From the sequence record MZ443769.1: 64,000 nucleotides of DNA, one strand, 5' to 3'. Shown in pieces: positions 34,657-38,862 of the stretch (position 1 is the first letter of the stretch; each line of letters opens with the position of its first letter). The notes beneath the pieces are model-generated. The model searched no databases and was not told the origin of the DNA. It worked only from the letters and a program-made list of their open reading frames with translations. A program made the position numbers and the translations under genes.

Positions 34657-34914
34657 ATGGCTGTAGGCTTTGGACCTGCTGATGGTGTTCAAGATACCAT
34701 CCACGCAAACTTGATGAATGAACTTGATCGCGTTCGTTCAGAACTTCAAGGTAGTGGTAGCGATTATTGCCATGACTGTGACGCAGAGATTCCAGTCATG
34801 CGCAAGCTTGCAATGCCGAACGCTATCTACTGTGTAAGCTGTCAATCAGATCACGACGGCAGCGCTCACGTTTCCTATAATCGACGTGGTTCGAAAGACT
34901 CACAGTTGAGGTAA
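34657..34914 (+). CDS. ybiI: DksA/TraR C4 zinc-finger protein, YbiI-like
   Basis: CHDC...IP..R..A.P....CVSCQ; C-terminus YNRRGSKDSQLR as in enterobacterial YbiI (recalled). Confidence 0.85.
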   Translation: MAVGFGPADGVQDTIHANLMNELDRVRSELQGSGSDYCHDCDAEIPVMRKLAMPNAIYCVSCQSDHDGSAHVSYNRRGSKDSQLR

Positions 34915-36385: not shown

Positions 36386-37102
36386 ATGACAACTAAACCT
36401 GAACTGAGTGAGTTCGCTAAAAGCGGCCGTATCGTTCGTCAATGTGAAATCCGTCTGGCTCTTGCTGATTGCTATCGGACTCTGCGTGATAACACATTCT
36501 TGCAGTCGATTGAATTGCCTGCTGATGAACGTAAAGCATTCAACATGTTCACGTCTACCATGGACGAAGGCGATTGTGTACGCTTCCAATCCATGGTATC
36601 AACGTGCGCCTTCGCCCTCGATAAGTTTTGCAGTGGCGCACTGACTGATCTCTCTAAACTGATCGCGATTCATTATGATCGCTGCCGTGAAGAAGATAGC
36701 ATCCGCACTTCTATCCATCCGCATCAACAAGCTATCATGGCTGATCTTGCGCGTACTGAGAGTGTCACTGTTCATGTGGCCTCTGTTGAGCCTGAAGAAG
36801 ACATTCGCACGTTCGTTGCGGCTCTGATCGAATACATCAAAGAGCATCTGGACGAAGAAGACCGCGAGCCGTGTGTAATCGAAATCTGCGAAGCGCTTGA
36901 AGGTGAAGAGTACGATATCTTCGCAGACAAGACCGAAGACGAGATGTTCGCGTTCTTGCGTGAAGCGATGTTTGCCACAGACATTCCTGTTGAAGATCTC
37001 AAAGAAGATGTTCTGAATGTTATTCAAGGAAACGGCTGGCCTCAAGTGGGTATCTTCGGGGCTGACGAGGCTGACGATGAAAACTACGCACTCGCTCCTT
37101 AA
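36386..37102 (+). CDS. acidic protein ending in ssrA-tag-like peptide EADDENYALAP
   Basis: TAAGGA SD; C-terminus read directly from the sequence. Confidence 0.8.
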   Translation: MTTKPELSEFAKSGRIVRQCEIRLALADCYRTLRDNTFLQSIELPADERKAFNMFTSTMDEGDCVRFQSMVSTCAFALDKFCSGALTDLSKLIAIHYDRCREEDSIRTSIHPHQQAIMADLARTESVTVHVASVEPEEDIRTFVAALIEYIKEHLDEEDREPCVIEICEALEGEEYDIFADKTEDEMFAFLREAMFATDIPVEDLKEDVLNVIQGNGWPQVGIFGADEADDENYALAP

Positions 37103-37274
37103 TCGTTACTGGCGCGAACTGATCATTGTGATTGTGTTCGCTGCCGTTGCTGCCGCTGTTATTTTTCTTGGAGTAGAAAGCCCTAAGGTTGTCGTGATAG
37201 TGGCAATCATCTGTGCTCTCTACTTCATTGCTGTTCGGGTCTGTAGACCATCTTATGGGGATAAGAAAGAATGA
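37077..37274 (+). CDS. small membrane protein (2 TM)
   Basis: GAGG before ATG 37077; two hydrophobic helices. Confidence 0.55.
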   Translation: MKTTHSLLNRYWRELIIVIVFAAVAAAVIFLGVESPKVVVIVAIICALYFIAVRVCRPSYGDKKE

Positions 37275-37887: not shown

Positions 37888-38862
37888 ATGAAGTACGGAT
37901 TCGCCTGCAAGCTGATTGATAACAAGGGCAAACAGCCTTTCCCTAATCGCAGTATCAGCTACAAACACTTCGCACCGTTAACTGACGAAGACCAGAGACT
38001 CAAACTGATTGAGATCGCTACGCACAACCTGACAATGTTGCTCGCTATGATTCACTATGTCGGACGCTTGCGTATGGACTTGCGTATGTTCCGCATAACA
38101 AGCGAACTGCTTCCTCTGTACACGCATCCGAAAGTCAGTGCATTGTATCAAGAGCCTCACATACGATCATTGATTGAACCAATGCTTGCTGCGTGTGGTC
38201 GTGCTGCGCGTACACGTCAAGTTCGTTTGTCGTTTCACCCAGGACAATTCACTGTACTTGCATCTGACCGACCAGAAGTTGTCGTGTCTGCAATTGAAGA
38301 ACTTGAGTACCACGCATACTGTGCATATCAGATGGGATACGGCAGAAAGTTCCAAGACTTCAAAATCAACATTCATCTGAGTGGCCGACTCCGTGCAGAA
38401 GGTTTCCGTGCTGCGTTCAAACTCCTGTCACCTCACTGTCGTCGTATGTTGACCGTCGAGAATGACGAGATCACCAGCAGCATCGAAGACGTGTTAACTC
38501 TAGGTGACTTGTGCCCGATCGTCTTGGACGTGCATCATCATTGGGTAATGACTAACGAATACATTCTGCCTACAGATGATCGCGTTAAGCGCGTGATAGA
38601 CTCGTGGCGCGGCGTTCGACCTGTTGCACACTATTCAGTGTCTCGACCTGAGCATGTACCGTCACGTGGTATGCCCGATCAGAACAAGCTGCAAGCTAAC
38701 AGAATGCAGTTACGCGCTCACGCTGAATACTATCACAATGAAGACGTAAACGACTGGGTCCGCACTTTCTCTGATTTCGACATAATGTGCGAGTCAAAAG
38801 CTAAAAATCTAGCTCGCTTAAAATTGGTGTATTTTGAGTCAACTCTGCATATAATAGGCTGA
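37888..38862 (+). CDS. uvsE: UV damage endonuclease (UVDE)
   Basis: RLSFHPGQFTVLAS, LTVENDE, LDVHHHW, HYSVS, DIMCESKAK motifs. Confidence 0.92.
   Translation: MKYGFACKLIDNKGKQPFPNRSISYKHFAPLTDEDQRLKLIEIATHNLTMLLAMIHYVGRLRMDLRMFRITSELLPLYTHPKVSALYQEPHIRSLIEPMLAACGRAARTRQVRLSFHPGQFTVLASDRPEVVVSAIEELEYHAYCAYQMGYGRKFQDFKINIHLSGRLRAEGFRAAFKLLSPHCRRMLTVENDEITSSIEDVLTLGDLCPIVLDVHHHWVMTNEYILPTDDRVKRVIDSWRGVRPVAHYSVSRPEHVPSRGMPDQNKLQANRMQLRAHAEYYHNEDVNDWVRTFSDFDIMCESKAKNLARLKLVYFESTLHIIG

Follow-up and report, generated by a model that had tools for sequence, protein, structure and literature searches.

What does a near-copy of the ssrA degradation tag do at the end of a phage protein, and which factor would read it? 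The question arises from a stretch of 64 kb, hereafter the window, comprising bases 186001-250000 of the Erwinia jumbo phage pEp_SNUABM_52 (MZ443769, 261 kb, Sasquatchvirus Y3). The open reading frame (ORF) pEaSNUABM52_00286 in this window ends in ...GADEADDENYALAP, followed directly by a TAA stop codon at 37100-37102. As set out below, the feature is real, is under selection, and belongs to a motif that recurs among phages and reproduces the host tag without its ClpX end. As for its role, a probability of roughly 0.4 is given here to the motif mimicking, from within the phage genome, the part of the ssrA tag that the adaptor binds, and so docking its carrier protein on SspB/ClpXP.

The tail of the carrier protein and its conservation

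The last eleven codons (37067-37099: GAG GCT GAC GAT GAA AAC TAC GCA CTC GCT CCT) encode EADDENYALAP, which is identical to AANDENYALAA at 8 of 11 positions, the changes being Glu for Ala1, Asp for Asn3 and Pro for Ala11; this reference is the E. coli tag, and that of the Erwinia host may differ. ANDENYALAA was confirmed as the E. coli tag by running ARAGORN on an ssrA gene 100% identical to the annotated E. coli ssrA. The likeness had been pointed out in the first-pass annotation, and the match directly before the stop was recovered on re-reading the sequence. Using the amino-acid frequencies of 102 long ORFs from the window, the chance of an identity of at least 8/11 is 5e-8 for a given C-terminus and ~5e-6 for the whole window, and no second DENYAL-like motif is present in its six frames. 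ARAGORN detects no transfer-messenger RNA (tmRNA) or transfer RNA (tRNA) within the window, and the tail is encoded in frame by the last codons of the 238-codon ORF rather than added co-translationally from a tmRNA. In the tag, AANDENY is the SspB-binding part and ALAA the ClpX-binding part (PMC8512704). The C-motif-1 degrons of ClpX have a C-terminal Ala-Ala with a free carboxylate; the present tail ends in Ala-Pro.

Using tblastn, the gene (family F1) was found in 33 phage records, with homologues in Y3 at 97% identity and in Alexandravirus and SNUABM_46-type Erwinia/Dickeya jumbo phages at 21-31%; the gene order around it is kept in these Erwinia/Dickeya jumbo phages. An alignment of 13 homologues, which apart from the Y3 copy are 22-31% identical to the window protein, contains 18 invariant columns, 5 of which fall in the last ten residues (A229, E232, N233, A235, and L236), while residue 234 is either Tyr or Phe. 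The tails found in F1 are AADDENFALRG, AADDENYALAP, NAEDENYALAP, AAGDENYALRG, AADNENFALRG, AADDENFALPS, and AADDENYALRN. Conservation of the C-terminus among homologues was the check on which the first-pass annotation had staked its reading; when it was run, the tail turned out to be the best-conserved block of F1. A profile search over 1.84 billion representative proteins returned only five clusters, all five with the motif at their end, and two of these, from public runs, end in ...EAADDENYALRG and ...GDAEDENYALAP. In pEa_SNUABM_17 (L150:3587-4078), an in-frame deletion has removed the second helical domain, so that the N-terminal domain is joined directly to AADDENFALRG (...QHQAADDENFALRG). 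The tail region 37034-37093 is unchanged in the one public run covering it, a high-depth run, the contigs being fragmentary. Public runs with Y3-like phages also show a dense substitution cluster and contig breaks at window positions 36589-36824, from the end of the first domain to the start of the second.

The tail also lies within reach of another gene. The first-pass annotation had noted that the ATG of the next ORF (37077) falls inside the tail, and had cautioned that this might constrain the sequence. The start and a 26-nucleotide (nt) overlap were confirmed: the ATG sits inside the tail codons GAT GAA, with a GAGG Shine-Dalgarno-like site at 37067-37070. The tail could, accordingly, be read as a by-product of the overlap, in which the Shine-Dalgarno site, the start, and the first codons of the membrane-protein gene are what is conserved and the likeness to ssrA is due to chance. 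Such a reading would suit the conservation of the overlap, and of the ATG inside GAT GAA, in most F1 members, as well as the near invariance of GATGAAAAC at the DNA level. The codons tell otherwise. Among 12 distinct sequences, the tail frame uses TAC, TAT, TTC or TTT for Tyr/Phe, GCA, GCG or GCT for Ala, and CTC, CTT, CTG or TTG for Leu, i.e., 3-4 synonymous variants per tail site, whereas residues 4-8 of the overlapping frame each show 3-5 different amino acids; the conserved part of the downstream protein (K-R-Y-W-R-E) begins only after the tail stop codon. Because the tail frame changes synonymously while the overlapping frame changes its amino acids, the comparison indicates that purifying selection acts on the tail peptide and not on the start of the next gene. 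At locus L025, Asp-Glu is encoded by GAC GAG and the usual overlapping ATG is destroyed, and Asp-Glu-Asn is nonetheless kept. Conversely, locus L023 has the overlap but has lost the motif. The same tail is also found where the usual overlapping partner is missing, in two further families described below (in F3, the next gene lies well downstream, and in F2 a different gene follows), and the match itself has a chance of only ~5e-8. Overlap as the cause of tail conservation is, therefore, ruled out by the codon test, L025, L023, and the F2/F3 gene arrangement, its residual likelihood being negligible, and the earlier caution is dismissed.

In the AlphaFold2 model, no helix or strand follows residue 215, and the predicted local distance difference test (pLDDT) score falls below 50 from residue 225, i.e., over the last 14 residues. 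The body of the carrier is less informative. Its N-terminal domain has no informative fold match (the best VIA-align Z of 8.2 being under the meaningful level for helical bundles), and Foldseek against PDB, BFVD, and AFDB gave no match outside F1 other than generic helical bundles; BFVD also holds a 169-residue partial homologue in phage Alexandra and one of 128 residues. Pfam returned no match, PHROGs a single marginal one (E 0.0035) to a family without assigned function, a word-indexed search only the 97% Y3-type copy, and a PDB sequence search none, with weak leads only in the ESM Atlas. The features are listed in Table 1. In the gene block of the carrier, every gene is on the + strand, closely packed or overlapping. 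The neighbourhood also includes a UvdE ultraviolet-damage endonuclease gene at 37888-38862 (PF03851, 154 bits) and a DksA/TraR-type C4 zinc-finger gene at 34657-34914 (Y3 annotation, with Pfam matches on the orthologues in L024 and L025).

Table 1. Positions of the carrier gene, its parts, the overlapping gene, and the loci of the internal motif (window coordinates unless a locus is named).
Feature	Position	Strand	Description
Carrier ORF pEaSNUABM52_00286 (family F1)	36386..37102	+	238 residues, isoelectric point 4.3, annotated hypothetical
N-terminal helical domain, residues ~5-121	36398..36748	+	AlphaFold2 prediction; generic four-helix bundle, pLDDT mostly ~76-85, lower at C-terminal end
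Second helical domain, residues ~137-215	36794..37030	+	AlphaFold2 prediction; absent from SNUABM_17 variant, which retains the tail
Linker, residues 216-228	37031..37069	+	flexible; acidic directly ahead of motif; variable, gapped alignment columns
Core motif A-D-D-E-N-Y-A-L, residues 229-236	37070..37093	+	equals tag positions 2-9 except Asn3 to Asp
Last two residues (Ala-Pro) and stop	37094..37102	+	variable; corresponds to Ala-Ala-COOH of ssrA tag
Next gene, 65-residue predicted membrane protein	37077..37274	+	first 26 nt overlap tail; not part of the motif's function
F7 loci	L153:5842-7035; L148, L152, L161-L163, L169	- (L153)	phiEco32/NJ01 group and 90-kb relative

The motif on other phage proteins

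Scans of 2.9 million viral contigs, with ADDEN[YF]AL and then with A-[D/E/G/A/V]-D-E-N-[Y/F]-A-L, found the motif A-x-D-E-N-[Y/F]-A-L on seven protein families, F1 and six further carriers, whose bodies show no similarity to one another by BLASTP. F2 is a very acidic protein of 290 residues in Erwinia phage Yoloswag, also found in Rivsvirus SNUABM_5 (...QADDENYALAP; ...DADDEDFAFKN). F3 is a 438-residue protein of Agricanvirus (RAY, Ea35-70), AH06, and a 287-kb contig (...PAADENYALKA; ...VAADENYALKS; ...QADDENYALKG); its distant homologue in a Proteus phage is devoid of the tail. F4, of 186 residues, is encoded by a 230-kb contig (...DDAGDENYALPA). F5, of ~300 residues, is found in 63-65-kb contigs, with a homologue in the Erwinia pyrifoliae phage pEp_SNUABM_08 (...EAGDENYALEG; ...DAGDETYALEG); at L168:5406-6305 (-) and L171:529-1395 (-), it has a hydrophobic, signal-peptide-like start (MNKSRLVLGATMLGLASMANA...), the start codon being uncertain. 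F6 groups proteins of 124-182 residues from 61-kb Aeromonas phages, in which AGDENYAL is followed by 4-6 residues. Tail peptides of the motif type are exemplified by QAADDENFALRG, EADDENYALAP, and AGDENYALEG. The named hosts of the carrier phages (Erwinia, Dickeya, E. coli, and Aeromonas) are gamma-proteobacteria, and a single copy of the motif was found per phage genome.

In the seventh family, F7, the motif is internal (S-A-[D/A/N]-D-E-N-F-A-L); the carrier is an ATP-grasp (RimK-like) enzyme, labelled 'S6 glutaminyl transferase', found in E. coli Kuravirus phages (phiEco32, NJ01) and a 90-kb relative. The motif stands more than 100 residues before the C-terminus, as the only invariant stretch of an acidic and otherwise variable linker that separates the catalytic domain from a C-terminal domain of ~90 residues. 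Internal variants include ADDENFALAA in NJ01 and ANDENFAL in PAS59. Because the motif is internal in these Kuravirus enzymes, it can presumably act without a free end.

Exactly two residues separate its Leu from the stop in 5/7 families, the same C-terminal offset as in the tag, and the motif lies two residues from the stop in 14/29 loci of the DEN scan. A control scan of the same design, in which DDN replaced DEN, returned 16 matches at 14 loci, namely ankyrin repeats and internal folded segments, and not one C-terminal acidic tail. The tails bearing the motif are acidic and probably disordered. It has, thus, the attributes of a short linear motif under selection, namely a disordered tail, variable flanks, purifying selection, seven dissimilar families, and a negative control.

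When 28 tails from the seven families are set against the tag, position 1 is free, Ala2 is present in 28/28, Asp4 in 27/28, Glu5 in 28/28, Asn6 in 26/28, Ala8 in 28/28, and Leu9 in 27/28, while position 7 is Tyr in 17 and Phe in 11. Position 3 is free (D, G, A, E, and once N), although the scans demanded a codon starting with G there, and the residue spectrum is, therefore, partly a matter of ascertainment. Positions 10-11 are also free: the last two residues are AP, RG, PS or RN in F1 and KG, KA, KS, PA, EG or KN in the other families, and a free C-terminal Ala-Ala is never present. With regard to the residues reported as SspB contacts (1-4 and 7), Ala2, Asp4, and Tyr/Phe7 are conserved, Ala1 is often present, and Asn3 has given way to D, G, A or E, with N retained once.

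Scanning with Asn permitted at position 3 mostly recovers the tag itself, 117/120 matches being host tmRNA genes at prophage ends. Refined scans with Asn or other A-starting codons at that position gave no true C-terminal tail, with the possible exception of L242:84-108, a candidate on a 264.6-kb viral contig that ends in ...GEARDENYALTVA before the stop (...ARDENYALTVA), in which position 3 is Arg and Leu is followed by three residues. A mini-ORF ending in ANDENYALFP and a stop, conserved in three prophage contigs (L234, L237, and L238), was discarded: it lies on the strand opposite to a P2 gpV-like baseplate gene, the conservation of which has most likely produced it as an artefact. A scan for the tag variant ANDENFALAA led to tmRNA-like loci (L197-L230) of Photobacterium, Francisella, Neisseriaceae, Thiotrichales, and one Enterobacter sp., and to no occurrence in any Erwinia or Dickeya representative genome; tmRNA blastn against the phage collection gave no Erwinia record, and literature searches yielded no sequence for the Erwinia tag.

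Taken together, these families also bear on whether the tail could be a relic of DNA capture, i.e., a piece of host ssrA gained by recombination, spread as a module, and now functionless. The constant two-residue offset from the stop would suit a copied segment, and GAAAACTACGC is presumably common to the tail DNA and E. coli ssrA. Nevertheless, synonymous codon differences are seen both inside families and from one family to another, yet the encoded residues do not change in proteins of only 21-31% identity, the flanks are wholly different between families, and a neutral relic would decay, as it has in the lone SNUABM_3 lineage. A capture relic is, thus, very improbable.

Candidate readers of the motif

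The reading preferred here, docking on SspB/ClpXP, would work as follows. The last ten residues are encoded in the gene itself as a short linear motif (A-x-D-E-N-[Y/F]-A-L, then two free residues), a copy of tag positions 2 and 4-9 from which the terminal Ala-Ala-COOH is missing; two predicted helical domains and a flexible segment precede it. This motif would dock onto the ssrA-reading machinery, with the adaptor SspB as the foremost candidate reader, which would bind it as it binds the front of the tag and tether the client to ClpX. As ClpX needs Ala-Ala-COOH, the tail would be insufficient as an autonomous degron, and the carrier would rather become an adaptor-dependent ClpXP client, a natural counterpart of the engineered DAS tags, and, while bound, it would also occupy SspB. 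SspB binding, ClpXP involvement, and the outcome, degradation or occupancy, are what we infer from sequence comparison.

Several published properties of the system are consistent with such a role. SspB-tethered substrates are degraded in vitro even without ALAA, and tags without ALAA need SspB (PMC8512704); autonomous ClpXP degrons require a terminal Ala-Ala, while weaker degrons depend on adaptors (PMC10862746); and the degradation conferred by DAS and DAS+4 tags is SspB-dependent (PMC8138137, PMC10659297). Measured against the DAS-type design, the ClpX end of the phage tails is fully weakened (Ala-Ala is never present) and the adaptor part is kept partially, with 6/7 matches in the common F1 form AADDEN[Y/F] and 5/7 in the EADDENY of the window. 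The first-pass annotation had proposed either a non-degradable decoy for SspB, ClpXP, ClpAP or Tsp, or a tuned degron. Its link to the ssrA machinery fits what was found, as Ala-Ala is always missing, the motif recurs, and one carrier clade has an SspB homologue; the part concerning Tsp/Prc fares badly, this reader being unlikely because the carrier has no signal peptide.

Phages also encode candidate readers of their own. Agricanvirus, a clade carrying F3, encodes an SspB homologue: RAY gp39 (L193:21468-21920), annotated as such and reported to be cytoplasmic (PMC10299810), scores 29.3 bits on PF04386 and E 6e-12 to the E. coli SspB chain 8ET3, and its C-terminus, KKPTLTVVK, is ClpX-binding-like. 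In the same phage, the 438-residue F3 protein (L175:8831-10144) ends in ...AADENYALKA. RAY gp39 and the F3 protein may, thus, be a phage-borne adaptor and client pair, so that the reader would possibly be the phage's own SspB homologue in Agricanvirus and host SspB in the window phage. Phage SspB homologues, including that of pf16, have been described (PMC5587285). They are widespread in jumbo phages: with a Salmonella SspB as query, tblastn detected SspB-like genes, for the most part annotated as hypothetical, in pf16 and in large phages of the phiKZ-like Pseudomonas, Ralstonia, Xanthomonas, and Vibrio groups; that of phiKZ is PHIKZ232 (229329-229625). The host SspB query was taken from AGRM01000002.1, a record of the phage collection that is in fact a 691-kb chromosomal contig of Salmonella enterica subsp. 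houtenae, and which holds ssrA.

A number of observations weigh against docking on SspB. According to the published reader maps, SspB relies on positions 1-4 and 7 of the tag, ClpX on 9-11, and ClpA on 1-2 and 8-10. Flynn's 2001 study reportedly names Asn3, together with residues 1, 2, 4, and 7, as SspB determinants; in the aligned tails, this position is free, which is a real argument against simple SspB mimicry. Conversely, Glu5 and Asn6 are almost invariant in the motif, likewise Ala8 and Leu9. To our knowledge, Glu5 and Asn6 are not among the reported SspB contacts, and positions 5 and 6 differ among the tmRNA tags of different bacteria. Judged on these alignments, the conservation of the motif fits no single published reader map, and a free position 3 next to fixed positions 5-6 suggests that SspB may not be the sole reader. 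A tblastn search detected no SspB homologue in the Y3, Alexandravirus or Yoloswag phages, so host SspB would have to be the reader in the window phage. In pEa_SNUABM_3 (Alexandravirus lineage, L023), the tail has decayed to GGGDNGTFDFRM and the motif is dispensable; this natural loss shows that the motif can be lost. That locus (L023:3600-3720, equivalent to window 37031-37102) still has the protein, the overlap of 26 nt, and the start of the downstream gene, and the tail reads ...KVGGGDNGTFDFRM. Lastly, if the signal-like segment of F5 is real, its tail would lie outside the cytoplasm and face the periplasm, where Tsp/Prc reads ssrA tags.

The conservation map could suit a reader other than SspB alone, the motif being then a docking peptide for another host protein or assembly (a ternary complex of the ClpX pore and SspB, ClpA, or a further factor reading Asp4-Leu9), with an outcome that need not be proteolysis. 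The pattern in which positions 2 and 4-9 are fixed and 1, 3, 10, and 11 are free departs from every published SspB, ClpX or ClpA map, and the Kuravirus motif lies far inside its protein. However, ClpA and ClpX each require residues that are absent or free in the motif, an SspB homologue and the motif co-occur in Agricanvirus, and we know of no other protein that reads the Asp4-Leu9 part of the tag. Joint reading is conceivable, as SspB and ClpX simultaneously contact opposite faces of Tyr7 in the cryo-electron microscopy structure of the delivery complex (PMC9963277). All in all, a different reader is unlikely, though it deserves to be taken seriously.

Another alternative is that the tail is a decoy, which would bind SspB or ClpXP while sparing the carrier, and so block the delivery of ssrA-tagged proteins or of RseA during infection. 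The Ala-Ala needed for ClpX engagement is always absent, some tails ending in Pro or Gly, and the single motif copy per phage genome in the viral-contig scans would also suit this role. Moreover, phages do interfere with the pathway, as seen from the SspB homologues of pf16, phiKZ-like, Ralstonia, Xanthomonas, and Agricanvirus phages (PMC5587285). Nevertheless, a lack of ALAA does not spare SspB-tethered substrates from degradation in vitro (PMC8512704), and E. coli is little affected by the loss of SspB (PMC10659297), which makes the gain from blocking it uncertain. A decoy would, furthermore, need the peptide alone, yet there are seven distinct, individually conserved carriers, including an ATP-grasp enzyme. 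Such a diversity of carriers, among which an enzyme bears the motif internally, suggests that the motif serves each carrier rather than constituting a single dedicated decoy. We, therefore, argue that docking on SspB/ClpXP fits the many-carrier pattern better, and consider a decoy rather improbable. A cleavage site of a prohead protease (S/A/G-x-E) was also considered and set aside: Asp at position 3 is a misfit, and the carriers include non-jumbo phages.

Known systems and implications

Compared with the ssrA tag, the phage motif is the same at residues 2 and 4-9 (with a conservative Tyr/Phe exchange), lies at the same distance from the C-terminus, with two residues after Leu9, and is likewise part of an unstructured tail. 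However, the tag is added by trans-translation, whereas the motif is gene-encoded, has D, G, A or E in place of Asn3, is missing Ala-Ala-COOH, and is internal in F7. The closest engineered counterparts are the DAS and DAS+4 tags (McGinness, Baker and Sauer 2006, reviewed in PMC8138137 and tested in PMC8512704), which, like the phage tails, keep the front and have a spoiled ClpX-binding end, which is why their degradation depends on the adaptor. They are man-made and have an intact AANDENY, while the phage tails are natural, altered at position 3, and only putatively adaptor-dependent. RseA(1-108), like the proposed carriers, is a genome-encoded SspB client delivered to ClpXP, but its SspB-binding sequence is unrelated and its VAA-COOH end arises via cleavage (PMC8138137), whereas the phage tails resemble the tag and have no Ala-Ala end. 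The phage SspB homologues (RAY gp39, pf16 gp18, and phiKZ ORF232) likewise show large phages acting on the SspB-ClpXP pathway; they copy the adaptor, while the tails copy the adaptor's ligand, and no such homologue was detected in the window phage. Mimicry of host peptides by viral short linear motifs is well known in eukaryotic viruses, and the phage motif shares with it a short, disordered, and convergently acquired copy of a host recognition peptide. In the searchable full-text literature, no description was found of a bacterial virus copying a degradation tag or of natural phage proteins with ssrA-like tails.

Tentatively, phages of Erwinia, Dickeya, Aeromonas, and E. coli may have repeatedly acquired a copy of that part of the tag which the adaptor reads, as a portable module plugging their proteins into a host or phage-encoded SspB-ClpXP pathway. 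Such carriers could be adaptor-gated degrons, or degrader-like recruiters bringing bound host targets to the protease, and the position map (4-9 fixed, 3 free) would then reveal a reading of the tag that was missed by mutational work in E. coli.

The ssrA tag and its readers SspB, ClpX, and ClpA are among the best-studied recognition systems of bacterial proteolysis, and DAS has become a standard engineering tool. What appears new within the searchable literature is a natural, virus-encoded counterpart of such an adaptor-only tag, conserved, present on many proteins, and always without the ClpX end. Were the reader a factor other than SspB, the motif would point to a further factor that reads ssrA-tagged proteins. 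If docking on SspB/ClpXP is true, phages exploit or jam the clean-up pathway of trans-translation by peptide mimicry, about seven orphan phage protein families gain a biochemical handle, and natural tag variants would be at hand for controlled degradation.

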